Shown here: positions 305 through 46,800 of the stretch, piece by piece
Numbering within the stretch: position 1 is the first letter of the stretch
Layout: every line of letters begins with the position of its first letter
From: Epiperipatus broadwayi
Lineage: Eukaryota; Animalia; Onychophora
DNA length: 64,000 nucleotides
Direction of reading: 5' to 3'
NCBI GenBank assembly: GCA_028023455.1
Contig: JAQFVV010000007.1
Coordinates: forward strand, 18,290,001 to 18,354,000
Notes under the pieces: generated by a model
Seen by the model: the letters and a program-made list of their open reading frames with translations, nothing else
Told to the model about the DNA's origin: nothing
Databases searched by the model: none
Program-made: the position numbers and the translations under genes

Positions 305-972
305 CCATCCTATCTAATGTCTCTAGACTAATTTCTAGTTATAGCTTTAATTAGCACTGGTTAAAAATTTATTAAAGTCTGGAGATAATGCATGAGTAGG
401 CACTAGATAGGGATTTTATGCACAAATCATCTTGCATCCACTGATTACTATGGCTTGCACTGGATGTCACTACTAAATGGAAAGTTTTTCACTAACAGGT
501 TTCTCTGGGCATAGTGGCCGAGAGATTTCTGACTTCAATACAAGGAGAAGCCACAATACATCACATCATTGTTTTAACAACTTGTTTAAGCATAGAAAAT
601 GGTGATTATGTGCTATTTAGAGGATTAATATTTCTGTCCATGGAATGATGATGACTAAGGTTATTAAAGAACCAAAGACAACAAAATGTAGATACTGAAT
701 TGGGTTCAGATCAATATGACTTTACAAGTGAATGAGCTTGGATTGAAAACATGGTTTTTTTTTTGACTCATTTTAACTAAAAATGTGGCTACTGGAGAGT
801 TGTATTAGATCCTAAAATCTAAGTGCTATGCTCTCACATCCAAGGCTCCTCACTAATGAAAGCTACAAGCTAGAAATTATTCAGGAGTTTTTGAAGAGTA
901 TGCACTACATAGGGATTTTATGCACAAACCTTCTATGGCTGGCACTGGATGGCAGTATTGTATGCAGAATTT
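305..972. mobile_element. Hammerhead element (family A), degenerate, more than one monomer
   Basis: Short - strand ribozyme remnant at ~305-352, then + strand post-ribozyme, pre-ribozyme, degenerate core (853-882) and post-ribozyme sequence. Confidence 0.75.
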
Positions 973-1029
973 GTTTTTGATAAATGAAGCAAAGAAAAGA
1001 AAGGGACTGATAAAAAAATTAATAGTGTT

Positions 1030-2850: not shown

Positions 2851-3394
2851 CAAGCACTAACATCTGGCATCTATTGATTACTAAAGTTTACATTTGATGG
2901 CATAACTGGATGAGAGAAATTTTTTTTTGATTGAATAGCTATTGGCATTAATCACAACAACAGAAACATTATTTTTAAATAAATACTCATGTTGGATAAT
3001 TGCAAACTCAATCATTTTCACATGAATAGATTTTTCTTTGTTTCAGAAGTTATGTCTGCTACTTCTTGGTCATTTTTAAACATTTTTATTTACTTACATG
3101 CATTACTGTATTAACATGACTCTGGGATTATCATAATTTTTGATTATAGCAAATTAAATAAATGATGCTGTAAAAAAAAAAGATTTTGTACCTAAGGATT
3201 CACTAATAAGAATATCCCTTGATTTTTCCAGTAACAGAATCTAACAGATAAAGAAGCCCACTCTGCACATTATTGAGAAACTGTGGATTCATCAGGCTAG
3301 CATGATGACTAAATATTTTTAAAACTAAATTATAAACTATTCTAAATTAGCTTGGAAATCCTCAACTATCTTAAATTTAAAAAAAAATACTTTA

Positions 3395-3710
3395 GATCAT
3401 CATCACTTTCAAGATTATTGATACAATGCAGAATGAAGATCTATCCAAGTTCAATCCATCTTCTCCAATCTCTAGCATCTCATCTTCATGTCACTCCAGC
3501 TGACTTCATTATTTTATCTATCCAACTCACATGTGGTTTCTTTATAGGTTTTTTACAATATCTTGGAATCCAGTTTAAGATTTCAATTATTCATCTATTA
3601 TCATCTCTTTTAGCAATATGTCCAGCCCAACTCCACTTCAGTCTTTTAATTCTTTCAATAATGTCAGTAACACCTGTTTGCTCATTTACCTATGTATTCT
3701 GTATACTTTA
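3395..3710 (-). mobile_element. RTE 3' fragment
   Basis: Similar to 21286-21590, with a catcat tail. Confidence 0.8.
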
Positions 3711-4379
3711 GATATCAAATTCCAAGTCATGACATAGTATAAACAGTTGTGTTGAGCACTTCAGTATAAAACCTTTGAGGAAAAAATAGTTATATATATT
3801 TTTTGAAACTCATTTCGAAATGGATTTAATAGAAAAGCTAAAGTTTATAAAAATATATACATGTGTGCCTACTTTTAAACCTAACTTTGAGGTGTTCAAA
3901 AATATGTGATGATGTCATTTTATTTGCAATTATATGATGAACTATTTTCGTTTAAATTTTTCAAATATATTATGTTAAGTAAGAGCACACAGGTTAGTAA
4001 ATAACACATCATTGTGAGTGATATTACCCTTCTCTTCTTCAGATGTTGCTGACCTAATCAGTGACAGTCCTAGCATGATTTTTAGAAGCACTAATACTAA
4101 ATTTAAGATGATATTTTGCTAGAATAGTCTAGTTGTTTAGAGTAACACCTTATATTCAATATTCACAAATCTAAAGGCACCAGCCAGGTTCGATTTCCAT
4201 ACTTGTATGATTAGGTCAGCAATATTTGGAAGACATAATAATAACAACATTCCAAATTACTGGTTATTGAATGAATGTATGTAAAAGTTTAAATGAAGTT
4301 TAATTTTTTCTAAAATCATTTAGCGATTAATTATAGATGATGAAAGTAGTTAAACATATTATTACTAGCCATAAATAGT

Positions 4380-5760
4380 TTAAGGTCACGGTAAAATTGG
4401 CGGACTAGAGTTACAGTTTTCTAAATTGATTCCGAGCTGAGTTAAATAAAAAAAAAAAAAACAAGAACATGAGTTTATTCGATTAAATGGATGCATATAT
4501 CTAAGCCTATATAACTCGGTGCTTGAACATCATTTGATCTCCTGAACAATTGACGCAGTCAGTGATCGCAGAATGCCATTCGATTATCAGATTTGCCTAA
4601 TATGTACTGAAATTGAAAAAAAAAAAACATCTGAGACTTTTTCAATTTCCCTAAAAGCGAGATTTCAATTCAATCCCCCCATCCGCCATATATTCCCGAC
4701 CGTCTGGATGGTAAACATTGCTGCGCTAATTAAAATTTACAAGATAGTCGATGGAGTGTTACATCCTGACTGTTTTCTTCTCTCTTTTTTCATCTTATTA
4801 GGATGAAACACGAAGTACAGAGTACTGTGTACGTATATAACCTGTAAAAAAAAAAAAAAAATCATTATTATATATTTGTTTTACGCTATTTTTATTAATT
4901 TTTGTTTAAAAATTCGTTTTAAATATCTACTTCCGCTAGTTGCCTCCCTCCCCTCCTTCGATTCATGCTTAAAAATATTATTAATTTTTAAAAAAGTTGA
5001 ATTTATGTATTTAAATAGAATTTTATTGTTTTCTGTTAAATTAAAATTTAAGACAAATTTTTATTATAACGTCAGTTCAAAAATTATTTTCAGTTTTCTT
5101 ATAAAAAGTAATTGAACGATATATAATTTATTGATATTTAAAAATATATTCACTTCCTCATCAATAAACAATACCTTACTAATAACATTTTCAACAATAT
5201 TATTGAAGTCGTAAATTTCTGTAAGCCAAACCACACCTCTATTTCCGGTGAAAAGACGACAAATTCTGAAGTGGAAGTAATTTTTAAAGGCTGAAACCCC
5301 CATGAGTTTGCTAAGACCGACAGTAAATATCTCCGGAAGGTAAATAATTGCCTGACATGGCGATCTGAGATCTCGAACTAGTAATCCATCCATCAAGGTG
5401 AAATTGCTCTTAGTCATACTACAGCCGTACAGCAACTAAACAATCGCTTTTGATGTAATTTTTTAAAAAAGTCTTGTCATAAAGATGGCGTTGCTACTAG
5501 GAGCCGACTGTTAGGCGACGAATTTTAGAAGCAATTTTACTTGGCTTTTATTATTTATTTCAGTCTTTTTTATTAAAGTTAGCTGTAAATAAAAGCCTTT
5601 TATATACATGTAATAAATAAAATTATTACCGTTCGTTATCAATCATGCGTTTATATTATTTATTGTTAACGCATTTATATTCTTGCTACAAATTTGACCA
5701 TCAAATCGATTTGGCGACTCGAAGAATCGTTTTTTGATATTATTTTATTACTGTATTATG
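4380..5760. promoter_or_regulatory. CpG-retaining promoter-like region with a YY1/Pho-type motif
   Basis: Many CpGs relative to the depleted flanks. AAGATGGCG at 5482-5490. + strand donor-like cggaag|gtaaat at 5339 and - strand acceptor-like (t)n-acag at 4842-4860. Confidence 0.55.
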
Positions 5761-6519
5761 TGTAGTAGTGATATTAATTAACCAGAAGCATTAATTTTTA
5801 AAATCTGATTTTCCATAATTAAATTATAAAAGATTACTAAACCAGTATTTGTTTTGCATGAAAATGATATAATGAAAATTATCAAACTGTCAAAATGAGC
5901 ATGGAGATATAATGTTGATAATTGAGATGTAAAGTGAATATCTGGACTAAGGATAATCTCTAGTTTAATAAATTATTAGCAATCGGCATTAAGGTATTTA
6001 TGTGAAGTGGTTGATGTTAAAGTCGTGAGTGTTAGAAAATTTGACACTTATAAATGAAACTGTAATAATTTCCTATCTATAAATACTGAATAAATGATAA
6101 ATCTGTAAATGATTGTGAGTTCGAAACAATTGGCGAGTGCTGCTCAGCTATAAATGTGCATCTGGTATCAACAAAAGATTTATCAAGTATATAAAACACC
6201 AAAAGTATTTTTATCGTATATATAGCTGAATAAAAATATTTTTAAATAGTCTATAACAGAATAAGGACGGTTCAGCATCTCTCCAAAAGGAACAGTAGAG
6301 AGAAGACCTGTCTTAGCCAAATAGTCAATTGTGAATTAGTCTGAATTTTTATGACATTTAATTTTTGTTCTCTCCTGCTAAGAATGCCTAGACTCAAATT
6401 TACTAACCAATAATTGTAGATTTAGCTAAGTCAATTATGAGGCACTAAGTTTGAATTTGAACTTGAATTTGTAAGTTTGGAAAGCAACATTAATTAGAAG
6501 ATACAAGTCTCCAAATAGT

Positions 6520-6760
6520 TTCTATGATCCATAATCTCTCTTCTCCGCATCATGCTAGATAACTTTCTTATTTCATCCATCTGTTTCACATATGCCATTT
6601 TTGTCTTTTACAATCTCTTGGAAACCAATTTAAAACCTCAACCATCCATTTAGCAACATATATACCTAGTTCCATTCAGTCTTCTATTTTTTTCCAATGA
6701 CAGTAGTGGTTTGTTCTTTCACCCATGTATTTCATTTTCAATCTCTTGTTGTTAACCCTA
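6520..6760 (-). mobile_element. Older RTE 3' fragment
   Basis: Degenerate similarity to 21330-21600. Confidence 0.55.
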
Positions 6761-9700
6761 TTTAATTATTATACTTTGATTTATGTGTCAAAATTTCTGC
6801 CCTCATCACTTTGATACATTTCGCATAAACACATTAATATTATTATTAATCATTTATACATCTCTAGCCTAGATGTAAACTTTAAATCTCAATCAAAGAT
6901 CTATAATAATTCATTTTAATCTTCTTTTTCCTATGGGCATTCTTTAGTTATATCTAAAACTTCAGTCCACTATGCATTCTTGAAACATTTTAACAATATC
7001 AGTTGCTTTTATTGTGTTCATTAAATTATCTTCCATAAATAAATAATTTTTATAAATTTTCTCTATCAAAAACCAAGACAGTGATCTTCAGTTTATTAAC
7101 TATAAAATTGTCTCACAATTCAATGTGCAGTGATAAAACCTTTATTTACAATAGGAATTTAATTTTCTTTTAATGAAATTTATTTTACTTATCTTTCAAC
7201 TTGTTAAATATTTTCCTTGTTTTTCCTGGTGGCAATTTTTTTAATCATCCAGTATTTGATTTTAGTTTTAAATCTTTTTTCTGTAATAGAATAAATTGGA
7301 CTTGATTTGTTAGAAATATAAGATTACAAACAAAAAACATACTAAAAAATTATATTTGAACTTTGCAAATATAGAAAAAATAACAATAAAGGTGATCTTT
7401 TTTCTGATTGGACAGTATAATGTAATGGTAAGAATTGTCCCTCCACGTAACAAAATCTAGAACACATGCAAAATATACTAAAGCTGATCGAGTACGGATA
7501 CTGGGATCCCGAATCCGACCAACATTCAATCCTTTCAATTCTGCTCAACGATTTAATACCTATAGATGACATTTCTCAACGTACACAGACATTCAATTTA
7601 ACTTCGGTCCGGCAGTCACTCAGGGTGGAACAATAAGACTCATAGATTAACTAATTGAGCACTGATTTGTTCAGATATACACACATATGACTAAATAGTT
7701 AATCAAAATATCAATAATTGATTATGAAATTTAATAGAATAATCTATCTATAGATATAATGATGTATGTGCAATTAAATATAGACTTGGATAAAATGAAC
7801 TCACGGACAATAAAAATTATGGAAATGAGTTATAATTTTAAATATTATTAATTTAATACAACAATGACAAATAATAAATCAAAATATACAAAATTATGTG
7901 ATAGGAACGTGAGATATAACGCTCGCAGGTGTTAGATAACTAATGAGATTAATGTTACATATATCATTATAAGCATTTAATAAAGTGTAGTGCGGTGTTG
8001 GAGTTTATGCCTATATTAATATGCTAAATTTCTAGCTCTTTTGTAGTCTGCTAGATCATACGGAACTATATAGCCAAAGTTATGGAACTAACTATAATAG
8101 CGCTCCTATGATGTCTATCTATACAAAGTTAAATCGAGCATGTAATTGGGCTCAGAGATATGCAGGTTAGCATGTTAACCTAGATTAGGATGTACACTAA
8201 TGCTAGATAAGCATTTAATATAAAAGGAGAGAAAACTGGTTTATAATAGGTTTATCTATATACTCTATGGCACATATCAAAATATTAATAAAGCAAAAAG
8301 GTGCGAATGGGTCATTATTCACGGGCTTCAGTCTCCAAAGACTTGGTTTGCCCTAAGACTGCTCAACTTGCCATGAATAAGAACATTAGTAGTTCAGGGA
8401 GTCGGATAAGCATTATGAATAATCTAGGTCCTTGTGCCTAGTTCTAAAAGTGTGCTTGAACCCAAACTAAAAGTGGATGAGTGTGGCCTCCACCAGCACA
8501 TCATCAAGAATCATGCAGCAAGCAGATAAGTGTACATTACATACTTTGTAAGGATACATCCGCAACTTATACATATATATAACACAAATGCGTAAAATTA
8601 TATTATCGTGCCTTAAAATTAGATAGCGTCTATTTGCATATCTATACAATCTAGTTCTCAAATTTAGTATTTCAAATATACTATTTAGGGACTAAATTAA
8701 TTAGTAACCTAGTTTAATATTATCACCTGCATCTCAACATATATAAGTCTAAGGAGGATAAAGCATATTTGCGGGGTAATTATGAGTAAAACATTAAAAT
8801 ATGCTTTGAGAATATATCTGTGGCTAGTTCCTATGATGTACGAGTTATATATATAAATAGTTATAATTTATAACTAGAATTAAGCAAACTACAAATTTAA
8901 CTAAATAACTGATTATTGTAATATTAATACCCAAAACTTAATCAGTAAAATAATAATATGATCTCGAAATAGCGAGTGAGAATGAAGAATAATAATTCAA
9001 TTATTTAATATTTATTATAGCGAAGATTTGAAATTATCTTCGCAAATCGATAAGCTAAAATTATATTTATAAATACTTGCAGTTTCGAGTCATTTGGCAT
9101 ATTAAATACATATAATAATAAAATGATAAAATCTTAGAATAAATCATATAGATTTAGAAATAGGTATAAAAAGACCACAGAAAATTATACATTTAAAATA
9201 GATTATTAGAGTTTTACATTTTAAAAGAGAATTCGAGTTTTACATTTTAAAAGAGAATTCAAGTTTTACAATCAGGCAAGATCTAGCATTTAATAGTCTT
9301 CTTTGCAGATTTTAGTAAAGGTGTTTGGGAAAGGCAGATTTAATAAATAGCTAGCTTTTAAAAGAAAGAATCGAAAGTTACAGTTTATAAACAGAGCTCT
9401 TAGAGAAAACTTACCATTCAGTTGTTTCCATTGCAGTTAGTTTCTGGAGCACTTGGGAAGATATTAAGTTGACACTTTTGACGATGATTTAAAGATAATA
9501 GAGATTTACCATGGGCTGCACTTGGCTTTGCTGGTGTACAGCATTAGGTTTTATTGGACCACAGTTCTTCTCCATTCCACAAGGGCAAGCGGTGAATTAT
9601 GGCTGTCTACTCAACCATTTGGAAGATAAAACGAGCATAGATTATGTTAACAATTCACTTATTATATATATGATCGAATACTTGGCAACAAAACTTTTAG

Positions 9701-12700
9701 TATTTATACTTTTTAAACTCTGGCCACTTGTAAATGTTTTGTGAGCTTGTACGTAGCTGAAAAGTCCATTTTTTTATTTTAGCAAAACATATTTAATAGT
9801 TACAACCAGTAGAAAAACCCATTCATTTATTTTAGAAACACATTTTTAATTATAACCAGTAATTGAGATTTTGTTTTCCTGCTGTTATGTTGTTATTAAC
9901 ATTTTATATTTACCAAATCAAGTCCACACTATTTTAGGACCAATGTGTGACCTACTTCAAGATCTGTTTACAAGATCAAAATGTTATTTTGACAAAGTTA
10001 CTTTCATAATTAGTAGAAGACTAATTTTATAACCATACATGCAGAATAACAGGAAATATACGTATGTGATTTCAATAATACAACAATAAAGTTGGCTAAA
10101 TAATTTAACTAAGATATTTCTTAAACTAGAAATATTTATAAAATGAATATACATATCTGAAATATATACCAATAATATAACAATAATTTAAACTAAAATA
10201 TTTCTTAAATTAGAAATACTTATAACAGGATACATATCTGTAATATATACGTATACTATTAAATTACAGACATTCTGCTCGCATATATATACGTGATTCT
10301 GCATATATAGTAATTTAATGTTATTTAAGTGGGTACTCTGAGAGGGTTTAAACCTGGAATATGGATAGATGTGTGGGTAAAATAAGTGAAATGGGCAGAT
10401 GGATGAAACTGACCGTTTCAATAAAAAGAAAATCGTCTTAAAGTCAATAAAAAGCAACAATCAATAAAATCTGTTTATTGAATATTCTTTTTAAAATGTA
10501 ACTGAATAAATGTGAAACCATCATAAAGCTGTAAAATTCTTTTTTAAAATTTAAAATTGCATTTGTAATTTTTAAAATATAACATTACAGAAAAAACTAC
10601 TTAAAAAAAAAAGACATTAACTGCTGCAGTTTTCTATTGACTATCATTAAATAAAATCGAAAGAAAACCATATACTTTTTGTTTTAAAATAATTATTATA
10701 CAAATGTTGTGTAAAATAATCATAAATATTTAAATAAACTAGACAATTTTTTTTGCATGCTCTGAATTTAATTAAATCTTTTCAATCTCAAAACCAGAGA
10801 ACAAAGAACTTAGCAATCAGTGACATGGTAGGTAGGACTAGATTACTTTGAAGTTTTTAATGGCTGAAAAACAGTGACCTCTTCAGATGTTTTTTTGAAC
10901 TAATCAATATTATTTTTAATTTTACTTTTCACCATCAATTAAACACCAATCAGCAAAATAGCACTTAGAAGTACCTATAGTAGAGTGAAGGAAAGTTGAA
11001 AGTAGTCATTACACTTTTTAGAGATCTCCAAATGAAGTATTTTGTAATTATTTACAGAAGTATTATTAGTAGTTTGTAATAATATATTTTAAAAAAATAT
11101 ATGCTTTTAAAAATTTTTTTTATATAAGAATGTGCTTAATTCTCAAAAATACATATTTTTAATAAAGTAGCAATAAGTAAATAAGCTTCATTAAATTTAA
11201 AAACACATATAAAAATAGAATAGGTAACTTTGAAATAATTATCTGTAGTTAAACAACCTGCTAAAGAGGTTGTTTTCTATCAATTGAAATTAGATTTAAG
11301 AAAGAGCTTTGTTCTGTTTGCAGGATTATTTAGTGGAGCAGAGACATTACAAAAAGTGTGAAAAAAAAAATTAAAAGACTTTAGATCTGTGTTTGGGGAA
11401 GAATAGGAAGCTTAAATTGGAAATGTAAGATAAGTGTAAAAATGACAGGAAAAAAGTAAATGGGAAAAGATTATCTTTTGAAGAAATTGTAAAGAGAATG
11501 ATGTCTAGAAAAAGTACAAGAAGAACAAAGAGCAGATTGATAATCGTTAAAGAGTAAAGTAGCCATCAATATTTAAAAAAGTAAAACAGTGACAGAAAGG
11601 CCAAGAGAAAGTTGGTTGATATGTGAGAATCTGCTATTTGGCAGCTAACTGATAATGATGTTCCTTATTTCATTTTGATTACATATACAATATGTGTTCC
11701 CTTAGGAATTTTAATTTCACACTCTTGATGGATTAAAAGAAATACTGCAATGTACATAGTAGCATTTGGTTGCTGCAAAAATTTGGATTAAAGTAATTAT
11801 TTTGACATGTTGCCTGATTAAAAGGTTTAATTTCATTTAATAAATTTATATCTTAGAGCTATACTATTTTTTTTTTAATAGAACCAAAATAACCTTTTAA
11901 AATATTTAAAATGCTTTTACTGAAAAGACAAATCAGCTTGAAAGGGCTTTAATTTGATTGTATTGAGTGAGTAACAATGAGATGAACTCCACCATACCAT
12001 TAATAATAATTATAAGAATTATGTGGATAATTGCTTAGGAGGAGATGATATTTGATCATTTAAGGCTGTTAAGCATGATAGTTGCAGTTCATCAATTAAG
12101 CATTTTTTTTGCTTTAATCATCTGAGGATCAGTTCTTGAATCTTTAGCTCAGAGTTTAATACAGAATGAAATAAATACTGTATGTTAACTGTATTCAAGC
12201 ACCAACATGACATCTTGAGCCAAAAACCAATCCAGGAAACTAGCTCTTTAATTTGAAGTTCTGTGGTTGTGGTAAGTTTACAAGAAATGCTGTCTAGTTA
12301 TTATCTTTAGAAATTGATATTGTCTGAATGTAAATTAAAAGTCATATGAGGATTATAAGATAAATAATGTTGTAAATGCAGCTATTTTTCAAGTATCTAC
12401 TTTAGTGAAGACTTTTTTTTTCTAAATCTATTTCTAAATCTAAAAAGTTTCCCAAAATTTTCTAGAAATATGTAAAGAAGTTACTGGTAGCCCATTGTTT
12501 GAATACCATACATTTTAAATGAAAGACTTAGTTTAAAGTGCTGTTTAAGCACTAAACATAGAACAAGACATGACTGGGTCAAGAGTAAAAATCCTCAGTA
12601 ATAACTATCTTGTTTTTGCACTTTTCCAATTATTTACATCATATTAGAAAAGTCTTAATTATGACATATTTTAATAGTACTGTAAATAAGATTTATTGAT

Positions 12701-14216: not shown

Positions 14217-17200
14217 ATCAAATTTACTACAAAAATTCTAATCAACATCAAATAATTTTAGAGGGAGCTTCAAAAAAAAATGTTCAAACCCAAATCAAAT
14301 GTTGGTGATGATTATACTAAAACAAATACTATAGCTTTTTTGTTTTTATCACTACATCCATCTTGATTTCTCTATATTTCCATCATCTGCCCGTATAGAA
14401 GATCACACTGTAGAAGTATTTTCAAAAAATCTTCACTTATCAGGTAACTTAGAAATATCTGAATCTCCAGTCTTATATTGTTAGGTTGATATTTTTTGCT
14501 GCTCTAATCTTTCACAAGATAGGATCTAGTTGTTCTACAATACCTTTTAATTTGCTTAATGCAACTTTATATGGGTAATGTGCTTGAACAATTAAGTTGA
14601 TCTTATTAACATTAGAAAGTTTATGACCATTCAAATTAAAAGTTGTTAAATGTTTTCTTTCATTAATGTCTGATAATGTTTTTACTGAAGTATATTTTTT
14701 ATGAGTCATATTTAAGACATTAAGAATATTTTGTAAATTGTTCTTTGATCTGGAATAATATGACCATCAATGCTCTATAAATCTAGAAACTTGAAAATAA
14801 TTAATACAACTAAAGTTTAAAATTTGATGCAAAAATATTATCACCTGTGGCATCTTGTGCTTCTTAAGATTATAATGAATAGTATTTTAATATTAAAGCA
14901 AACACAATCTGCACCCTATGTTAAAAAATGCTAAAATTGTATATCACTGTTTTGAATATTATATAAATGGGCTTGAGTTTAAATTGAAATTCATCTCTGC
15001 TATTTCTAATGCACTTAAATCATGTAATATTTGAGCAATAAGTAACTTGATTATTATAATACTATATTTTAATCAACTAAACAATTCTCAGCTATGTGAT
15101 GGAATATTTGATGGCCTGCTGTTGTTTTTGGCTGTTTTTTTCCAGCTATCTGTAACATTATTTTGTTGGTTATACATCAGTTTAATGGTGGAAACTAAAA
15201 TAAATAATTATTTATTAGATAAAAACATCTGAAGATGTCAGTATTCATCAAAAAAAACTACTACAGATAAATAACAATGCTGCTGATTGGTAGATTCTTT
15301 GCAAAAGCAGTTGCAAAACTATTTGTAAACTCTCTTTCTATTGGTGTTAATAATGTGCAAAAAATTGTATACTTTCTGTAGTTATTTAAATATTTATAAT
15401 ATTTTTGCAAAATATTTATAATTATTTAAAAAGAAATAATATTGTGATTATACTTAGATTTTTATTCCAATATGTTTTATTTTTACAAACCCAAAGTTAA
15501 GAAGTACAGTAAAAATAAACATATGATTGGTGGTATTCTGCTAAATAAGAACTTTTGTGATATTTTAAAAATTATAAATGCAATTTTAAAACAGTATTTT
15601 ATAGCTTTATGATGACTTTGGACTTTAGAAATGAAATATAATTAATCAAGATTTCATTTTTTTTAACAGTATGCAGAAATCAATCAGTAAGAAAGTTATT
15701 TTTATTATATATTTCATTTTTTATTTATTTTTCTATATTTCCAATGTTTAAAATAATATTTTAGAATGTTTTTACTTGCAAAAATAGGTTTAATACTAAA
15801 ATATAAGTATAACTGCCACAAAGTTTGAGCAAAAAACATTGAAATGTGGAAAGATTAAGAAACTACACCATAAAAGTTTTTTTTTTATTACATTGATGGT
15901 TCATTGCACAGAATGTTAAAAGGGATCCAATAGGCATATTAAACCAAAAATTCAATTGAAGTAATTGAGATATTTATTTTTTACTTTATTCAGCTGAAAA
16001 CCAATCCAGAAATCTTTAGCTCATAGACAACTTTCTAACAACAGCACAGAGCAAAATTTATATAATCATATTATGATACATTCTTAAACTTCTTTAATAT
16101 TATGTGAAAGTTTTAATATGTGTTGTGGAGAGTAATAATGTTAGAATGTTTAGCAGCTTTTATATGAAAAAAGTGTGTACTTATGTCTGCATGTGTAGAT
16201 ATGTGCATACAACATTGACATAAAATACATTTGTGTGTGTATCTATCTGGCTATAGATATATATTTATCAATTGTAATTCTGAAAAAGATTGTTAGACAG
16301 TCGAAACTATAAGAAACAACAACAATAATGACAGGTGGCATTGCTAGAATCATATGGATAGGAAAATAAATTAGAATTACTGGGATTAAAAAAAAACTGA
16401 TTTTGTAGAAGATAATAGTTGAAAATAATGATTGATCTTAGCCCAAATCTAGAAAAGTTAAATACTATACATTTGATCTATGTTAAGTTGCACATGAGAT
16501 TTAGTATTTGGACATTTTAGATTGAGACTCTGTCTTGTCTTCATTATAAGTGGCCATTTCTAAAGTGAGTTTGGTCATTTTAACTGTTAAAAAAATGGAA
16601 AAAAAGGGCAAAAGTAGAGAGACTTGTTGTGCATCTAATTAATAGATAGGAATGCTCTTACATGCACACACAATCAAGAATAATCAAATACTTCATTGCT
16701 TAGATCGTGACATTTGAGCATGGAAATGGCAGCAGCTTTGGTCCATTGCAGTCATCCAAAAGTATTAACATAATAAGAATTGTGGCTTAATACTTTACCA
16801 TGCAATGGACTTGTCCAGATTACAATCCTATCTTGATCAGATTCAGCATTCATGGTAACAGACCAAACAATATATGTGAATAGATCAAATATAACCAACA
16901 AGAGAAGAAGGCCAATAAATGAAGATACTCAATGAATCTGATGATTACCATTAAGGAAGGGGACTTGGCTATAAATTGGCAGTCTATTTGCAGATAGAAT
17001 CAGACAGGAACAGATATACACCAGTTGCCCCATATTTGATTGCAAAGCCATAGAGCATATTCACGTATTTAAATCTGACATACTGCCATGTAATGGTTAG
17101 GCATACACCCATACCTGAATATGAGACAAGTTGCCATGGTAAAGCTGGTAGTGGACCTAAAGGGCACCTGATGTCCCTTGCTTGAGTAGTTATATGACAG

Positions 17201-17679: not shown

Positions 17680-17915
17680 TCACAGAAGCAAAACTTTCCA
17701 TACAGTAGCGCCACTCAGTGCAAGCCAGAGTAATCAATAGATGCATGAAGGTTTGTGTATAAAATTACTATCTAGTGCTCACTCATCCAACATCTCCGGA
17801 CTAGTTTCTAGCTTGTGGCTTTCATCAGTGAGGAGCCTACTGTATGGAGAGTTTTCTCTGTGAAAACAGTTTGTGTAAGTACAAAGAATGGTGATCATGT
17901 GATGTTTAGTGGTAT
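17680..17915. mobile_element. Hammerhead element (family A), head-to-head arms
   Basis: - arm with intact core to 17837, joined directly to a + arm (tactgtatggagag...gtgatgtttagtggt). No TSD seen. Confidence 0.8.
17786..17837 (-). ncRNA. Type I hammerhead ribozyme copy
   Basis: CUGAUGA A AGC CACAA GCU A GAAA C UA GUC at 17828-17799; stem I partly mismatched. Confidence 0.7.
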
Positions 17916-21293: not shown

Positions 21294-24251
21294 TCAACCA
21301 TTATCAATCCACTGCAGGATGAAGATCTCTCCAAGTTTAATCCATCTTCTCCGATCTTTAGCTTCTCTTCTCCACAACACCCCTGCACATTTTCTTATTT
21401 CATCCATCCATCTCACATGTGGTCTCTTTCTGGGTCTTTTACAATCTCTTGGAATCCAGTTTAAAATTTCAATTGTCCATCTATTATCAGCTCTTCTAGC
21501 AATATGTCCAGCCCAACTCCATTTCAATCTTTTAATTTTTTCAATAAAGTCAGTAACACCTGTTTGTTGTCTTACCCATACATTGTGTTTTTGATCTCTT
21601 CTTATTACTCCCAACATACATCTCTCCATACTCCTTTGAGTGGTCTGAAGTCTCTGTATTGCTCTTCTATTAAGTGTCCAAGTCTCAGATCCATAAGTAA
21701 GAACTGGTAAAACACATTTGTTAAAAACCATCCTTTTCAACACACATAGGCATATTTCCTTTTAGTATCAAGTTATTTCTACCAAAAGCACTCCAATCAA
21801 GTTTAATTCTATGATTAATTTCCTCCATTATGTTTCCATCTGTATTAATAATCTGACCAAGGCATTTGTAACTGTTAACTTCTTCTAATTCTTCATAATC
21901 AATCTTTATTTTCATATTTTGAGCAAATCGATTAAACATTACTTTAGTCTTTTTAACATTTATCTTTAGTCCTACTTTTCACTTTTATCTGCTAACTCCT
22001 GCAACATTTCCTGCAGCTCTGAAGCATTATTTGCAAAAACAACTACATCATCTGCGAAATCTAAATGACTTAAATACTCTCCATTTACTTTCACTCCTTT
22101 AGTTTCCCATTTTAATCCACAAAATACTTCTTGCAGCACTGCTGTAAAGAGTTTTAGAGATATGGAGTCACCTTGTCTTACACCTTTCTCAATGTTGATT
22201 TTTCCAGTATTATTATGTAATCTAATTGTTGCTGTTGCATTTTTATAAATATTCTTTAAAATATGACAATATCCTGGATCTATACCTTGATGATCCAATG
22301 CTTTAATCACTGAAGAAATGTGTATAGAATCGAATGCCTTTTCATAATCTACAAATCCAAAACATAATGACAACTCATATTCGTTTGTCCTTTCTATGAC
22401 TTCTCTCAATACCTGGATATGATCTATTGTACTAAAACCACTTTTAAATCCAGCTTGTTCTCTTGGTTGGTGGAAATCCAAAGTTCTCTGTAGACGAGTT
22501 GTAATTATCTTGGTAAAAATTTTATATAAAACTGATAAAAGGCTGATAGGTCTGTAATTTCTAATATCTTCTTTATCACCTTTTTTAAATATTAAAATTA
22601 TTACTGCATTCTTCCAATCTTCCAGTACATCTTTATCATTTAGACATTTGGTATATAACTTTGCTAAAATTGTTTCTATTTCTTCACCTGCTTCTTTTAA
22701 TATATCAATTATAAATCCATCATTTTCTGGAGCCTTTCCTTTCTTCATACACTTAATTGCATGTCCCACTTCTTCATTTAAAATTCTGGGCAATTCGGAA
22801 GATGTAATAGATATAGGAGGTACTTGTTCTTTATTACTATATAATTCTTGATAAAAATCTTCTACCAATTTCATGATGTCATCTCTCTTTTTAGTAATAA
22901 TTCCATCTTTTTTTCTTATTGCAGATATAAATTTCCTACCAATACCAAAATGTTGTTTAACATTTTTGAGACTTTTATTTTCTTCTACAGCTTTCCTTGC
23001 TATTTCACAGTTATACTTTCTTATATCATTTTCAACTCTTTTCCGTACCATTTTACAAAATTCGAGATATTCAATTCTTTTTAATACATCATTTTTGTAT
23101 ATCTTCATATTCCTTCTTTTCTTCATAAATTCTCTAGTCTCAGTAGAAATTTTATTAGTCAATTGCTGCTTTTTTCTACCAGCTATGTTTATTGCAGTTT
23201 TTAAAAGTGTATCAGTTATTTTCATATTAATTTCATTCAAATCTGTATCATGTTCAAAATCTCCTAACACTTGAAACCTATTTGTAAGTTCTAATTTAAA
23301 TTCATTAGAATGTTTCTGAAGATTAGGAATATCAACTGCAAATATTGTTTTTCTTAATAATTTTTGTCTCTCTAGTTTTACATTAACACGTAACTTACAC
23401 CTTACTAATCGATGATCACTTCCCGTGTTAAATTTATTAAGAACATTACAATCTTGAAATATGTATTTCCTCTTTGTCAAAATATAATCCAATTCTGCTG
23501 TACCTTCATTTGGATGCTTCCATGTCCATTTCCTTTTAACATTTTTCTCAAAAAATGAATTCATAATATAAAGTTTTTCTTTTTCTGCAAACTCCACAAG
23601 TCTATGTCCTCTCTCATTTCTATTACCATAACCAAAATTACCTACAGCAATTTCATCTTTCATTTGTCTACCAATTCTAGCATTAAAGTCTCCCATAACA
23701 ATTTTAAAATGTTGTTTACTCTGATCAAAAGCCTTTTGTACATCCATATAAAAATCTTCTACTACTTCATCACTATGAGAACTTGTTGGGGCATAAACCT
23801 GAATTATCTGCATTTGGTATCTGCTATTAAATTGTATAACTAATCTTGCCACTCTGTCCGATACACCATCAATCTGCACAATATTGTTCTTCCACTTTTT
23901 ATTTATAATGAATCCTACTTCACTTGTATTTCCAATATGTGTGCCTTTATAATAGAGTATATGTCCACTTTTTAAATCAATTGTTTTTTTTCCTTTTCTT
24001 CTAACTTCACAAAGTCCAACAATGTCCCATTTAATATAAGACAGTTCTTCTTCTAATTCTTGCAATCTTCCTTCACTTGAAAGTGATCTGCAGTTGTAAG
24101 TACCTAAATAAAAAGTCATCTTCAAATGGCAGCCTGGGTCCACAATCAGGGGATTCTTAGCACCCTCCGCCTTCGGCCACCAACCGCTGCCTTGGTTGAT
24201 GACTTTACAGCCTCCTGGGAATAAGGGCCATGCTTTATTTTTGTCTGTCAT
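21294..24251 (-). pseudogene. RTE ORF (AP endonuclease + reverse transcriptase) broken by two frameshifts near the C-terminus
   Basis: ORF-track pieces 21972-24251, 21721-21939 and 21294-21743 contain GTYNCRSL, MGDFNA, YRPISLL, FVDYEKAFDS, GVRQGDSIS, HLDFADD and YGSETW motifs. Confidence 0.92.
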
Positions 24252-24577: not shown

Positions 24578-26263
24578 CTATCTTACATACATTTCTTTAA
24601 TCCAGTACTCATAATGCAAAACAGATATTCCAGTTTATATTTACTATTTTTTGAGATTTAGCTTTACTTTACCAGTAAATAAATGCAGTGGCCAAGAGAA
24701 TCTGATTTATTGCTTTCAAAATAATGTGGTGGCAGAAAAAGCTTGAGACATAACCAAGACTAAACACTGGTGCTTTATTTATCTAATTATTTCCAATTAT
24801 TTAAGCATTGATTGATTTACTGAACAATGGAATGTTGCAGGGGTAATTAACTGTTAGTGAAGGTAAAGGTTGGTGTAAAGTCACTCGATTATTTTTTTGA
24901 TCTGCACTGTTTAGTGAATTGGTAGGTCAGACTCTGGCATATAAGTCCTGAGATTGAATCCAATGCTGGCACTTTTGATAAACAAACTTTTTACAAATTC
25001 TCAAGCAATATATCCATTCATTTATTTATTTTAGTTTGTCACCATATTTTTTTTTAAAGTAATTTGTTATATTTTGTTAGAGTCCAATTAAAAGACTCTC
25101 TCAAGATAGATTCACTATTTTTCAAAAAGGTTTTTGACCATATTTAGAGTTATTGAACTTTACAAACTTTTACATCACAATTACTTCCTGAGGATTTTTT
25201 TGGGGGGACACCCTATAGTGTACCATGAATAGAGAATGCAATAAAATCTGTTGATTACTGGTGCAGAATAATAGCTTTCTATCATTGTGTTGCATTATCC
25301 TATTGCTACTTGCCCCCCAAAATTTCAGCATTGTACAACCTGCTTTCTGGATCACATGTCATAACATTCACTGAAGTGAAGTTTCTACCTTACAATTCTA
25401 GTATTAGGTTATTGATAGACACTAGATGGCAGTTTAAGCAAATTCCTTTGCTTTAAAGACTAACTTTTTGGTAGAAAATAATTTTGTAGTTTTCCATTTT
25501 ATGTTATTCACAATAAAGGCATAAAGATATTACATACTCTATGTTATTCAGGTCAAATCAACTTAACTGTACATTTATGTATCTGATCAATATTGGTGGA
25601 ATGTTTGCAATGTCATATAGAGGCCACTGATTATTCATTGGCTACATTTAAAAAGTAATAGATTGGAGAGTTTTCACTTAATCTAATATAAATTCCTGGC
25701 AATCTTGATGGGTTATATTTGAAAATTTTAAATTTTTATAATAGGTGTAGTTGAAAATTAAAATAGTGATGGAACCTTATAAAAGACAGTTATGAAATAG
25801 ATTTACTATGCTATTAAAATTGGTGGATATCCTTCTAAATAAAGATATGTTATTAGCATATTGTATATATAGTAAATATATCTATGTATTTGGAAGTAAA
25901 AGCTTTTTCCCAAATGATGTTGACAATAAAAGGATTAGTGCATTTGTTTGTTATGACCATGACCCAAGCATGCTTATTTTCTTTGTAAGTTGCCTTTTGT
26001 CAGTTTATCTAATCTCCCACTTATTGTTAACACAATGTATGCAGTGTTTTGGGTGATGAAATAATGGTATTATAAGTTTATTTCATCATTAGGATGTTAA
26101 AATAAACTGCATTAAATGTTAGTTGGCAAATTGGTCTAACTGCAGTTAAATATCATCGATAAACAGAGCAAAACTCTCCATACAGTATTGCCACCTGTGC
26201 TAAACAGAGTAATCAATGGATGCCAGAAAGCTTGTGAATAAAATCCCTATCTAATGCCTACTC

Positions 26264-26322
26264 ATCCAATATCCCCAGACTAGTTTCTGGATTGTGGCCT
26301 TCGTCAGTGAGGAGCTTTGGAT
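26264..26322 (-). ncRNA. Type I hammerhead ribozyme, mirror copy
   Basis: Reverse strand reads CUGACGA A GGC CACAA UCC A GAAA C UA GUC UGGGGA; position N7 varies (U to C), as the core tolerates. Confidence 0.75.
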
Positions 26323-26407
26323 CTGATAGTTTTGTAGTTAAGTAGAGATAAAAGGTGGTTGCTAGGGGGTTGCATTAGATCCTAAGATCTAGATGCAGTG
26401 CTCTCAG

Positions 26408-26466
26408 ATCCAAAGCCCCTCACTGATGAAGGCCACAAGCCAGAAACTAGTCTGGGGATATTGGAT
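26408..26466 (+). ncRNA. Type I hammerhead ribozyme (best-preserved copy)
   Basis: CUGAUGA (26423-26429), A-GGC-CACAA-GCC-A, GAAA (26443-26446), C-UA-G-UC with predicted cleavage after 26452. Stem I CCUCA/UGGGG plus AUCCAA/UUGGAU across an internal loop. Confidence 0.85.
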
Positions 26467-28639
26467 GAGTAGGCATTAGATAGGGATTTTATGCACAAGC
26501 CTTCTGGCATCCATTGATTACTCTGTTTAGCACAGGTGGCAATACTGTATGGAGAGTTTTGCTCTGTTTATCAACAATTAATGTGCTAGTATAGGAAATG
26601 TGATCATGTGATGTTAAATATCATCGGTTAGTCAAAACGTTTAATTCTGCATTCAGCAAAAATCATATATAATAATATAAAATACTTCTAGTGATTAATA
26701 TATATCAAGATTAAGACTTATACATCTGGTACAATAGTAACTGCAATACTCTTTAGACACAGAATAAGACAGTAATATTTTTATGAGAAAAGATCAACCC
26801 ATCTTATCTCATTTTTTTATTTAGAGAGTAATATAAAACTTGGGTTTATAAAAATGAATATTAAATCAACCACATAATTTATTTTAAGATATTTTATATT
26901 GAATGATATTTTTAATTGACATATATGAGAGTTTTCTCAATTTAAACATTGTCAACATTGATTCAAACAATGAAAATATGTAATACAGTGCTTAATATAT
27001 TAATGATAATTATCAGCTTTACAAATTAATCCTATTATTAAAGATTTGTGCTTATCATACATATAATTAATCCCCAATCACAGAATTATTATTAATTTAA
27101 ACACAATTAATTTTATTTCCATCAAAAGTACTGACAACCTGTGAAATTTTTAAGAGTGGTGCTTTATTATAGTATTGCACTAAAAAGTAAGAAAGAAAAG
27201 AAAACAGGGCATTTCTAATTTCACAACCACACAACTATGTTATTTTTCCATACTAATCGTTGTTATAAAAAAATCTAATATATTTTTAAGCATAACACTA
27301 TTTTCTTAATGAGATAAGTAAATCTGCATTCTCTCTTTACCTCATATTCTCAAATAGAACCACTAAACATCACATGATCACCATTCTTTATACTTACACA
27401 AATTGGTTACAAAGAGGTGATGTGATGTACTGTGACTTCTCCTTAAATGGAGTCAGGAATCTCTCAGCTCTAATTCATAGATTTTGAGCTTCAGAGTCTA
27501 CCATTTTATGACTGCATCAAACCATATAGAGAAAAACTAAGTGAATGGTTTATTGCCCGGAGGTTCATATGAGGGTTGAAGACTGTGACAAAACTGGACT
27601 GTGTTCCAGGGGTTTTAGCTCCAGAGCTGGCACCTCTACTATTACACTAACCATGCAGGCATTAGAAATAACAGTGGAGAATGAGAACAAATTATAGGCA
27701 GATATGATTTTAGAGGAGAAAATGAACAGTGAAAAACTTTTAGTAATAGACTTAGAATATGATATCATAATTTATGAATGCAGCCACAGAGATTGAACAA
27801 TAGAAAAGTAAAGAATCAGGTAAACATGATGCTGATAAATGAACATAGTCAAATTTGTATAACAAGGCTGGATGGTAAATTAGTAATTGTAATCATCAAG
27901 TTGAAACCCAGAAAATAAAGATCATGATAATGATAAATATAAATATTAAACCAAAACCCTCACCCACAAATGAAGAGATTAGATCAGGATAGCAATGATA
28001 AAAATATGAGAAAAATCAGTGCTTAAAGAAAAAATGGATTAAAAAATAGATTCAAAAATGATAAATCTCAATAAAGCTTTGGAGTAACCTGTTGCCAAAA
28101 TATACTAAAAGGAAGAAGAGTTTAAAAAAGATTGGATTATATAAAAGCACTCCAACTAATACAGGAAAAGTAAATGCTGAAAATCAGAAAGGGTAAATTA
28201 ACATTTTCCAAATAGCAATATAAGGCAGAATGTTATGAGATGAAGAAAACAATGAGAAAAATAAACAATAATGATTTACTTAGAGAATATCTTCATGAGT
28301 ATAACTAATAGGAATTTGCAATTAAAATAGAGGATAATAAAAGATAAATAAGGAAAAATGCTAGGGAAAAGCTATTGAGAATAAATTAAATGACATCATC
28401 ATCTTTTAGTTGTGGTGATGGTATTTTAATGGTGAAGTTAAAAGAAAAATGAAAAACAGTGATAATTTCTTCATTTTTCCATTATTTTGAAATTCTTATT
28501 TTTCTTCAATTTTTCATTTTTTTTTTAAACTTCACCATTAAAATACCATCACCACAACTAAAATATCCCTGGAATTTTCCTTGTGCTCCAAAAAAAAACA
28601 AAAAAAAAACAGATTTTTATTCAAATTTATTTTTAGCTT

Positions 28640-43033: not shown

Positions 43034-43844
43034 GATGAAAATTCATGAAGCAAGTCATTTTTTTCCAAATTATGAAGAATATTATCGAAATCATCCCTTT
43101 AATTTCTCATTTCATCTATCAGGACATGGTGTGCAGTCAAATTGGACATTAGAAAATCAATTTAACCAATTTTATACGGACCAACAGAGGTTACATTCTA
43201 ATATGCGAATGGTGGAATTACAGTCATCACCAGCTTTAACTCAGTTGTTAAAAAACTCAAGCACAGAGGGAAACACACAGACCCAGACTGAATCTCAACT
43301 CATTCGTCCCACATCTAAACGAAGACGATCAACTGAAAATGATAATAATGCCTTGGACTTATCAACAGATAAGAAACCTCGACACAGTATTAAACGAACT
43401 TCACCCAAAACTTGTGAAATTAGAAGTTCTCAGGAAATCCTTCCTCCACAACCCAATTTACGAGATCTCTTAGGACATAATATAAATGAAAAAATAAGAG
43501 ATCATATGCAATCTGCAATAGCAAACAGAGGAAGTAAATTAATGGAAACAAAAGAGGGAACAAAACCAATATCAACAACTTCAAATAGAGACAATAATAC
43601 ATTAATAGAAACAAAATCCACAGTAACAACTGTAAATAAAGACATTAGTAGATTAATAGAATCTAAAGCAATGAAGAGTTTAAAAGCACATTCAATTAAT
43701 CCTATAAAAAGCAGTAGTAGTCTGAAGGTCAAAGCCAGTCAGGCCTGTCCAAACAACCCGGAAGTGGTCAACTTAAGCCATTGGACGGTAAGAGAGGTGT
43801 ACTCCTTTGTTAAATCCATCCCAGCATGCACAGACTATGCAGAG
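43034..43844 (+). CDS. Large coding exon of the same gene, ending in the N-terminal half of a Ph/Scm/SAMD11-type SAM domain
   Basis: Acceptor tttttattttcag at 43021-43033 and a 270-codon open frame with a PxDLS-like motif (ALDLS). It ends LSHWTVREVYSFVKSIPACTDYAE, matching SAM helices 1-2, then a GAG|gcaagt donor. The next exon (expected xFxxxxIDG) was not found in the window. Confidence 0.85.
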
Positions 43845-46800
43845 GCAAGTTAAATATAAAAAAAATACGATCTAATGATAGGCTGTTTATTACCAAATAT
43901 AAGTTTATATAATATCTGATTTTATTTACAAAATTCTTCATTATTTTATAAGAAACACTAAATCACAGAAAAGTGAATTGTTTACAATTGTCGATTAAAT
44001 ATAATATTTCGTACAAATATAGGCGGGGGGGGGGGATCAGGAAGGAAATAAATTTAAAAACTCAGATATCAGAAATAAATTTTTTAAAAATATATAATCA
44101 GTTCATTACATACTTTTTATTTTTGGAAAAATAAAGATAGCATAGTTTTTTTCCTTCTGTGTTTTACTGTTTCTTGTTGTACATGCTTTGTTGTTAAAAT
44201 GTTTTAGAGTTTTCTAAAAATAAAAACTATTTTACTAAGGAATAGTTTTGTTAACTAGTATTAATTAGACTTAATTCTCTTTACTCTATATCAGAGACAT
44301 CTAGTGTAAGCTTGAGTAATGAGTAGGCCTTAGATGGTATACTACCACATCCATATCCCCATAGTTTCATTATGGAGTTATTTGGATTTAGTATAGAACC
44401 TAATGCATTTTCACGTCCATTGGCCATGAATAATTCCTTTATTACTGTTAGCTAACAATAGTCTAAAACCGAAAACCTTAATGTTTGAATCTAAGTTCAT
44501 ATCATCAATAACTATAAACTTCAGCATTATGTTAATTGTAAGCATTTTTTAATTTTCTGCCTGGATTAGAACATACTAACAATACATCACATAATTAGCT
44601 TTGCTTAATTTAACATAAATTTTCAGTACTTTTAATTATACCTCAATGACATCTATTGCAGGCTTGACTAATCAGAATGTTTTTTATTTCCACTAAATAA
44701 TAAGGTCATGTCGTATATTGAAGTCAAACAAAATCTGCAATTTATAAATAAAAAATTGATATTAAACAAAATGATTGTTTTGGATTTGGTATATTGCTTA
44801 AATTATATGCTATAAGTGTGAGAATATAATTTCATTTGTATATTTTTATTTTATTTATCAACAATGAGCTATGTGTTGAAATATAGCTTCACTTTTATTA
44901 GAAATAGAAATCTCTGAGTCAATAAACTCAAAATAACTTGTTATATTTTATCCTTTATCATTCTCCAACCTATGTTGTCTTTAAAACATACTTTATTTAT
45001 ATTCTATCTCACTTCCATAAGATTAGTTTTCTTCACTCAATAATAGTTTTAGTCATCTTTATCCAACCCCACTGTAAAAAATAAACCAATGTTTTGTCTA
45101 TTCATTTAATCTATACTGTGCTTATTTTTCCATATAAGTTCATTATTTGCATTCTTTCTGACTGTGTCTAGACTCTAGTAGAAAATATATATTTTATATA
45201 ATTTTATCATATAGTTTGCAAAAAATATCCTTCATGTTAATTTTATTTATAAATATATTTTATGGGGGGGGGTTTGTCTGTGCAATCGTTTAAGCTCTAA
45301 AGAGTGGACTATTTGCTTTATTATCATCATAATAGGCTTATTTCTGATAGCCACTTGTACATATATATGTATAATTAAATACCAAATAAATACCTTCTAA
45401 AGAATTTTTTTACTTTTTCAAGCAGTTATGTTTGATGAAAAAATCAACCAATTTCTTGCTGGATGTATGTTTCTGAATGAAATCTGATATCATCAGTAGC
45501 CTGGAAAATCAATTGAAGCTCTGATGAACACAATCACCCAATCTCTTAAATGTATTTGCAATGGTCAACCTGATTATAAAATGGCAATTTAATTAATGCT
45601 TTCTTTGCATCTGTTTAATGTTATTATACTTATTTAACTAACTTTTCTTTTTAAATAAATATTTGAATATCTAATTAATTAATTAAATACATCATAAATA
45701 TATAATAATTCTAATGTTATTTACACATTCTCCATAGAATTTTTCTAATGTTTCTAGCAACAGTGTTTTATTAGAGGAATTAACTTTGTCAATTTTTTCA
45801 TCAAATGCTTCCACTTGAAGCATGGAAAATATTTTTCCTTATTAGTAATTAATATGTTGAAGGCCAGACTATAATATGACAGTTGCACACTTATATAAAT
45901 AGTTAATAAGATAAACATCATAAACTTAAAAAATAATTTCAAGAGTTATTTACTTTGAAAAACAATGGCATTAGTAGATAGGATTAGTAAATCAACTGTC
46001 AACTTGCTAGTTGAAAACAATATCAAGCTTGATCATGTGACAGTTTATATCTTAGAAGATAAATATTATATACAGTCTTACAACTATTGACATCACACCA
46101 TATCTAAGCTTCTTTTTACTCTCATACATTGGTTGTTTTAACTGTCATTTAAGTAAGCACCTTACTGCTCACATAAATCTCACGAGTTATTCAAATGAGA
46201 TTATGACTGAAACTCTTTTTTATTGCCAAAGTTTGTCTATAATTGTACAATCAGTTTTCACTCTAGACATAAAATTTCACTAATCTGCTTTTAACTCAAT
46301 GCCTATGATTACTTTTTTATATTACTACTTCTCAGACACCATTGGATGTTCTGCAGAAATTTTTATTAACTTTGCTAATTTGCATATTGTTAGACTTTAT
46401 TAAAATGCAATGCAAATTAGCATGTTGATTCTTGCAGTAGAATAATTCTTGTTTTGCATTTTATTATTTCTACAGTGACTCAACAAAGCCTATACTGATC
46501 ACCGTGTACTGCCTCATACATGTATACAACATTATTAGTAAAATATTTACAAACTGGCTAGTATATATCATTAATAATATTGCCCTATGTGATTTGGTGC
46601 TCTAGTAGAGTGGACAGATTCTGAAGTTGGCTGTTTATAAATCGTCAGCAGTCGGTTATTTCCACTGCTCAAGTTTTTTATGTATTTCCAAGCAATAAGT
46701 TATTCATGTGGATGCCCTTTGAGTCCTAAAGCATAGGCTATTTTTATTATTGGTTTCTATCTATTATTTATATATTTTATATATATTCAAACTTTTATTT

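Follow-up and report, generated by a model that had tools for sequence, protein, structure and literature searches.

What is the element that occupies positions 26159 to 26612 of a 64,000-nucleotide stretch of the genome of the onychophoran Epiperipatus broadwayi (contig JAQFVV010000007.1, positions 18,290,001 to 18,354,000; hereafter, the window, to which all coordinates refer unless a locus is named), and how did it come to be there? A first-pass annotation, made from the letters of the window, placed here a dispersed, non-coding, retrozyme-like element built around a type I hammerhead ribozyme. Hammerhead retrozymes have been described from corals, mussels, amphibians and further animals, with Penelope-like elements (PLEs) proposed as their helpers, mainly from the co-occurrence of the two and, in Xenopus, from homology of pseudo-long terminal repeats (pseudo-LTRs). 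We conclude that the element is, most probably, a non-autonomous, non-coding metazoan non-LTR retrozyme that was inserted in the Penelope style.

The insertion and its family

The 454-bp stretch 26159-26612 corresponds exactly to one discrete insertion of a non-coding element, with the bounds originally proposed for it, and is flanked by an exact direct repeat of 14 bp, GTTAAATATCATCG, which occupies positions 26145-26158 on the left and 26613-26626 on the right and represents the target-site duplication. The insertion consists of two 5'-truncated copies of a longer unit in opposite orientations. The left copy (26159-26326, minus strand), delineated by the complementarity of the arms and the class of its outer end, runs from about position 250 of the unit, at the putative proximal start site of reverse transcription, down to about position 80, and the right copy (26327-26612, plus strand), delineated by its near-identity to units of tandem arrays, is in direct orientation and ends at the putative distal start site of reverse transcription. 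The two copies meet head to head at about position 26326 (±3), with a few bases of microhomology, and give rise to inverted arms of 172 nt (26158-26329 and 26401-26572) that are 97% complementary and are separated by 71 nt. Outside the inverted repeat, at the right end only, there is a one-sided tail of 40 nt (26573-26612, plus strand), which would represent the sequence between two start sites of reverse transcription; about 158 nt of the full unit are not present in the insertion. Because the right copy is 97-100% identical to units of tandem arrays elsewhere in the genome, the insertion appears to be recent. The arms differ at six sites, two of which are common polymorphisms of the family, including position N7 of the hammerhead core, and the arms, therefore, were probably copied from two different template units. 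As RNA, 26159-26612 is predicted to form a near-perfect hairpin with a length of about 190 bp and a folding energy of −327 kcal/mol (z = −33.8), in which the ribozyme is buried, and a transcript of either strand would hold one sense hammerhead. Thus, this locus is best seen as a recent, dead-end inverted insertion that is unable to release unit-length RNA itself; taken alone, it is an ordinary result, and it is the smallest version of such an insertion event, as neither side contributed a complete unit.

Within the window, the pattern CTGAYGA-N13-GAAACTAGTC has three matches (17799-17828 and 26278-26307 on the minus strand, 26423-26452 on the plus strand), compared to 0.00 expected from 100 shuffles, and five sites are within three mismatches of the older motif of the family. 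About 15 dispersed copies had been claimed, and BLAST searches with the element and its hammerhead region recovered each of these (at 853, 13.9k, 17.8k, 26.3k, 26.4k, 38.0k, 38.4k, 41.0k, 41.2k, 49.3k, 50.6k, 56.1k, 59.9k, 60.3k and 60.8k) as homologous copies of a single repeat family, with 70-86% identity; the family takes up at least 4,190 bp of the window (6.5%). As hammerhead motifs, these copies fared less well than as members of a family, given that the conserved core and the palindrome are intact in only three of the 15. The remaining 12 carry substitutions or deletions in C3, G5, G12, A14, stem II or stem III, and are dead, decaying relics, as expected of old transposon copies. In six of the window copies, the homology stops at the same position as at 26612, and at least two older copies extend 14-19 nt further; target-site duplications flank two older copies (12 bp at 55996/56578 and 9 bp at 13779/14217).

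Elsewhere in the genome, the unit forms head-to-tail arrays, with a unit length of 447-456 nt and one hammerhead per unit. The array and insertion loci analyzed here (L002-L030) were picked by similarity to the window copy, and the 40 best genomic matches to 26366-26612, which are 93-100% identical, sit in arrays. The spacing is 456 bp in L007 and other loci; for the array in L021, TRF gave a period of 447, with 5.6 copies and 94% matches. This 5.6-unit array ends directly against a (TAA)53 microsatellite (L021:3082-3240). The unit has a GC content of 38.6%, no open reading frame (ORF) of 50 or more amino acids (aa), and a monomer fold of −154 kcal/mol (z = −6.3 compared to shuffles), in which the hammerhead forms the tip of a long hairpin. 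Neither a tRNA-like nor an RNA polymerase III module was identified in it by ARAGORN or Rfam, and the unit is a simple tandem monomer, without any search having been aimed at an LTR, a primer-binding site or a polypurine tract. The array organization, lack of an ORF, low GC content and structured fold all agree with the initial designation of the family as retrozyme-like. These properties are shared with metazoan non-LTR retrozymes, among them the satellite 2 repeats of newt and axolotl, in which a type I hammerhead is embedded in a short, non-coding, low-GC, head-to-tail unit with highly self-paired RNA and target-site duplications longer than 4 bp, and which likewise coexist with PLEs (PMC7229834). 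The tandem repeats of such retrozymes are 150-450 bp long, and the unit found here differs in that it reaches or exceeds the largest RNA sizes reported (~170-400 nt).

Genome-wide searches of the 5.6-Gb assembly yielded 95,790 matches to the intact 30-nt motif and a single match to the reversed control pattern. This copy number is around 10^5, similar to that of the axolotl retrozymes (126,247 motifs; PMC7229834). The genome-wide count, together with the target-site duplications and the Penelope-type anatomy described below, bears out the proposal of an abundant mobile RNA family, which, judging from the 6.5% coverage of the window, may occupy several percent of the genome. In a search with L007:60-1280, the family was also detected in contigs of four organisms (671 to 11,690 contigs each), where the contig depth is highest over the hammerhead and about 100 nt downstream. 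These contigs, of about 0.1-0.4 Gb and of uncertain kind, show only the presence of the family, which, on this evidence, appears to be common to several related species. A full-text search of the literature for the motif string found no paper.

The hammerhead motif and its variants

In the right copy, the hammerhead core and helices II and III, identified by pattern match, span positions 26423-26452 (plus strand). All invariant hammerhead positions are present and in the correct order (C3 U4 G5 A6 N7 G8 A9; G12 A13 A14; A15.1 and U16.1; C17), so that the assignment to the type I core stands. Specifically, C3-A9 reads CUGAUGA and is followed by A10.1, A11.1, G12A13A14, A15.1-U16.1 and C17, with cleavage predicted after C17, between 26452 and 26453. 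The motif in both arms is CUGA(U/C)GA-A-GGC-CACAA-(G/U)CC-A-GAAAC-UA-GUC; the left-copy version (26278-26307, minus strand; CUGACGA-A-GGC-CACAA-UCC-A-GAAAC-UA-GUC), identified by pattern match and comparison of the arms, retains an intact core, and one of its stem II pairs is a C·U mismatch.

Helix I is open, and its two strands were delineated from minimum-free-energy folds, computed both for the segment and for the entire monomer, as well as from pairing in the alignment of the window copies. The 5' strand (26406-26422, plus strand) contains the outer 6 bp (AUCCAA), an internal loop and the inner 5 bp, and the 3' strand (26453-26468, plus strand) reads UGGGG, internal loop, UUGGAU; in the full unit, the helix extends into a long imperfect hairpin. 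The internal loop of stem I had been noted at the outset, and the folds recapitulate it. Helix II is closed, with 3 bp (GGC/GCC) and the loop CACAA in the folds. Helix III is the palindrome ACUAGU, which, within one molecule, would yield 2 bp closing a 2-nt loop that cannot form, so that the anticipated instability of this stem is apparent, whereas the self-duplex between two copies has 6 bp and −6.2 kcal/mol. Given that helix III is only a palindrome, a second copy would therefore be needed. The very short palindromic helix III, which implies action as a dimer, is another feature in common with metazoan non-LTR retrozymes; a difference is that helix III consists here of 2 bp and a 2-nt 'loop'. 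This configuration is known from newt, axolotl and PLEs, whose ribozymes act as dimers (PMC4209133; PMC7229834).

The proposed structure is in register in the window alignment, where 75% of the cells are paired compared to 17-42% when the structure is slid; the paired fraction in helix I is 78-85%, with one outer pair (19-69) counted as 19-64 and the other pairs valid. The older copies carry AGC/GCU in stem II and the copy at 26431-26441 carries GGC/GCC, in agreement with the first-pass annotation, and the window alignment contains 11 AU and 4 GC combinations at the pair 10.2-11.2. Genome-wide, this pair is G-C in 67,960 motifs, G·U in 2,415 and A·C in 3,067, the remainder of at most 22,348 being mostly A-U. 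Thus, two large subfamilies appear to be separated by a compensatory double change between A-U and G-C, and the variant at 26423-26452 belongs to the two most frequent ones in the listed matches to the 95,790-match pattern. A third subfamily, with 9,827 of the 95,790 copies (10%), has U at 10.1, resulting in a U-A pair with A11.1, which supports the register of stem II. The earlier claim that stem II covaries is accordingly narrowed to one compensatory event between two subfamilies, which does not amount to covariation with statistical support, as detailed below. RNAalifold produced no useful consensus from the window copies, which are neutral relics, with one row mis-specified in that run.

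Position N7 varies between U and C, as originally described. Among about 95 young units, the variation within the motif clusters at N7 and, where C7 precedes it, at G8, and, beyond these two sources of change (N7 variation and CpG decay at G8), no excess conservation of the core was detected in this sample, which has no statistical power. A cytosine at N7 makes a CpG with G8, and among the units in L002-L030, the G8-to-A change is enriched, with a minor allele frequency of about 15%. This pattern is consistent with the C7 subfamily inactivating its own core faster, through CpG decay.

Taken together, the motif and its context make it very likely that the sequence derives from a real hammerhead. 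It is likely that the motif is still active as a dimer.

Insertion anatomy and candidate helpers

Wherever an array in L002-L030 changes orientation, the order is '---|+++', that is, the half-arrays diverge from a central head-to-head junction; a few arrays have a single orientation. The same polarity was found among neighboring motifs on opposite strands within 2 kb of each other: in the first 100 genomic matches, 16 pairs were (−,+) and none (+,−), and in the U10.1 list, 26 were (−,+) and none (+,−), these counts having been made by eye on lists that partly overlap. In all 13 other complete head-to-head insertions, one end falls within unit positions 245-262 and the opposite end within 289-311. 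With the cleavage site after unit position 130, the outer ends are located about 120 and about 160-180 nt downstream of it. The window locus follows the same two-site rule: the outer end of its left copy (26159) is at about unit position 250, some 120 nt past the ribozyme cleavage site and within the 245-262 class, and that of its right copy (26612) is at unit position 290. Target-site duplications of 11-16 bp, all AT-rich, flank 12 of the 18 insertion clusters in other loci. The inner junction differs between insertions, as a result of 5' truncation, and several head-to-tail units are found on each side in many of them. Common variants are shared within insertions at 0.89 and 0.81, compared to 0.67 between loci, and the units are not identical; these values fit one source transcript per event, or a few that are closely related, but are only indicative because the loci were picked by similarity to the window copy.

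In published PLE insertions, the 5' end is truncated, a likewise 5'-truncated copy lies next to it in inverted orientation, partial tandems occur, and just one of the two ends bears a tail of 30-40 bp, and PLEs are reported to favor microsatellite and AT-rich targets (PMC8557442). The PLE enzyme of the anole cuts and extends both DNA strands, and reverse transcription starts at two adjacent internal sites of the RNA, the tail being the sequence between these two start sites (PMC11167929). The likeness of the present family to PLEs (PMC4209133, PMC8557442, PMC11167929) extends to each of these features, i.e. 5' truncation, the adjacent inverted copy, partial tandems, the one-end tail, AT-rich targets and, downstream of the hammerhead, two adjacent internal start sites. 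Thus, the combination of divergent copies, a one-sided tail, two end sites and variable duplications appears to be the published signature of PLE insertion. The retrozyme unit differs from PLEs in the absence of a reverse transcriptase (RT) or GIY-YIG ORF, and from metazoan retrozymes in the divergent head-to-head anatomy with a tail, which the retrozyme papers considered here do not describe.

Potential helpers are abundant in this genome. A first look detected 10,242 GIY-YIG candidates, and the 150 matches that were scored are all above the Pfam cut-off. Intact frames with RT and endonuclease (EN) domains, 800-901 aa long and with YVDD and GIY...YIG motifs, occur in 3.1-kb tandems. One such locus, L043:2300-8140 (G000:C12394:20944300-20950140), contains two RT and GIY-YIG frames of 901 aa each, arranged as a tandem with a spacing of 3,135 bp, as well as inverted partial copies nearby and, about 330 nt after the stop codon, a hammerhead-like motif with a U3-A8 core (TTGAAAA-A-GACTAT...ATAGTC-GAAAC). 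In the main sampled PLE family (L043, L045, L046, L048 and L049), the 3' untranslated region (UTR) carries a typical PLE minimal hammerhead, in which the core has U3-A8, one additional nucleotide follows A9, and G10.1-C11.1 closes a helix II of 6 bp; a second PLE family (L047) has a related motif. The retrozyme motif differs from the PLE minimal hammerhead in its 'canonical metazoan' shape, with a short helix II and a palindromic helix III. In the window, the sequence CTGAAAAAGATTGTTAGACAGTCGAAAC at 16280-16311 (plus strand) resembles the minimal hammerhead in the 3' UTRs of the intact PLEs of this genome, with a core variant, an extra A after position 9 and helix II closed by G-C, and may be the remnant of a PLE. 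For the PLE frames (L043:2300-5005 and L047:4776-7178), Pfam hmmscan returned no family, although PF01541 was found in the same frames by the genome search at 39 bits, and the YVDD and GIY...YIG motifs are visible by eye; we suspect that the composition bias of these K/N/I-rich proteins hides them from hmmscan.

These observations suggest the following scenario. By comparison with published relatives, arrays of units would be transcribed into multimers, in which two hammerheads would pair via the palindrome ACUAGU of helix III and cleave after C17, and a host ligase may then circularize the monomers. New copies, as the genomic anatomy shows, are made by Penelope-type target-primed reverse transcription, whereby the synthesis of cDNA would be primed by both DNA ends of an AT-rich staggered break and begin at two fixed places within the RNA, one about 120 nt and one about 160-180 nt downstream of the cleavage site. 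These two cDNAs would run towards each other and be joined head to head, with the expected outcome of divergent half-arrays, one one-sided tail of 40-50 nt and a target-site duplication of 11-16 bp. In its strongest form, the scenario holds that every event was built by both ends of the target DNA priming at two fixed sites of a multimeric or circular retrozyme RNA, so that the family would be a genome-scale in vivo read-out of Penelope insertion on a non-coding passenger; we put this generalization forward tentatively, as a possibility that is well short of probable.

Competing explanations and implications

Several observations weigh against the interpretation of the family as a self-cleaving retrozyme mobilized by PLEs. 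At position 10.1/11.1, most copies have A·A instead of the near-universal G10.1-C11.1 pair, and with only three Watson-Crick pairs in helix II, this mismatch may render the cleavage activity low or absent. No Rfam hammerhead model was matched at the gathering score or at E≤10 in cmscan searches of the window, of 26230-26500 (even with only these 271 nt searched) or of the U-A variant (L051), so that the check initially suggested for the ribozyme failed; the motif resembles Rfam Hammerhead_1 (RF00163) in the conserved core letters and the three-helix topology, but neither the A·A nor the U-A variant matches this model at E≤10. When the full unit (L007) was included, cmscan gave no credible family, the hits to mir-297, snoRNAs and others being at chance level. 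Covariation in the window alignment is not above that in shuffles, with double changes only at the pair 10.2-11.2, and genome-wide, there is no excess of G·U over A·C intermediates at this pair. The two intermediates are about equally rare, which shows that individual copies are not under selection and decay neutrally. The array units continue uninterrupted through the cleavage site, and cleavage is, therefore, not needed to explain the DNA copies. None of the sequencing runs in which the family occurs is on record as RNA. Finally, BLAST of the monomer against 20 PLE loci from several GIY-YIG classes, a tiny sample of the more than 10,000 candidate loci, detected no homology except for inserted retrozyme copies.

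The A·A mismatch, the 3-bp helix II and the failure of the Rfam models are also the principal points in favor of the most serious alternative, namely, that the element was mobilized as described but that its motif no longer self-cleaves, being kept within an RNA structure that serves another role, such as stability, transcription or recognition by the reverse transcriptase or the endonuclease, or simply hitch-hiking. The ends of the insertions, which are located away from the cleavage site, and the arrays, which span it, are in line with this possibility, and so are the findings that the purified anole PLE inserted in vitro without hammerhead cleavage, with no RNA-seq reads ending at the site (PMC11167929), and that PLE minimal hammerheads cleave poorly in vitro (PMC4209133). 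However, all conserved core positions are intact in the variants that have reached thousands of copies, polymorphisms that are common (minor allele of 12% or more) affect N7 and a position in an internal loop, not the core, and stem II shows apparent compensatory changes from A-U to G-C and from A·A to U-A. Furthermore, a mismatch at the base of helix II is shared with the axolotl motif HHR_Amex2, although it is U·U there and A·A here, and that motif measurably self-cleaves: as a monomer, 22% of it had self-cleaved after an hour, and dimeric constructs are reported to cleave much more efficiently (PMC7229834). On balance, we regard an inactive or differently used motif as a serious rival, but an unlikely one.

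The remaining alternatives concern the mode of spread. One of these is that a SINE-like element (short interspersed nuclear element) was copied by a long interspersed nuclear element (LINE) rather than by a PLE. Next to the element, there is indeed an RTE/LINE-type retrotransposon, represented by a 759-aa ORF with endonuclease and reverse transcriptase domains (21972-24251, minus strand; Exo_endo_phos and RVT_1), and target-site duplications of variable length are also typical of LINE-mediated insertion. However, no sequence similarity was detected between the unit and the LINE region 21972-24251, the unit has neither a poly(A) nor a microsatellite tail, and the obligatory divergent pairs with two ends 40-50 nt apart have been described for PLEs and not for LINEs or SINEs (PMC8557442, PMC11167929), so that LINE-driven spread seems improbable. 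An equally improbable explanation is that the family represents ordinary satellite DNA that carries a relic hammerhead and was spread without an RNA intermediate, through recombination or extrachromosomal circles. The tandem arrays and the lack of runs on record as RNA would fit, but the hundreds to thousands of dispersed short insertions with duplications, fixed outer ends and 5' truncation would not, and these features point to reverse transcription from a defined start. The least tenable alternative, largely refuted, is a foldback or miniature inverted-repeat DNA transposon with long terminal inverted repeats and an incidental hammerhead match, for which the 172-nt, 97% complementary inverted arms and the flanking direct repeat could speak, but which is contradicted by the 40 nt at the right end that have no counterpart at the left, by the variation in duplication length (9-16 bp), by the inner junction that shifts from one insertion to another, with several head-to-tail units per side in many, by the existence of pure head-to-tail arrays, and by the 13-position hammerhead core with three correctly placed helices, which is very unlikely to occur by chance. 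Another ORF in the window, of 272 aa and beginning with ATG (43035-43853, plus strand), has no Pfam match.

A retrozyme inserted in the Penelope manner, the reading that we favor, is an already known kind of element; what is distinctive about this family is its copy number, the A·A hammerhead and the very clean signature of PLE insertion. With roughly 10^5 copies bearing this signature, the family provides independent anatomical support for PLEs as the helpers of retrozymes. It also indicates that A·A in place of G10.1-C11.1 can occur in a hugely successful hammerhead-bearing lineage. Standard Rfam annotation misses this family entirely, and similar families are probably under-counted in large animal genomes. 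Under the tentative two-site reading of every event, and if the unit indeed shares no sequence with the sampled PLE pseudo-LTRs, the helper would recognize an RNA structure, that is, a hammerhead-tipped hairpin with a start-site module, rather than a shared sequence, and the helix II weakened by A·A could be a selected brake that keeps monomeric circles uncut.

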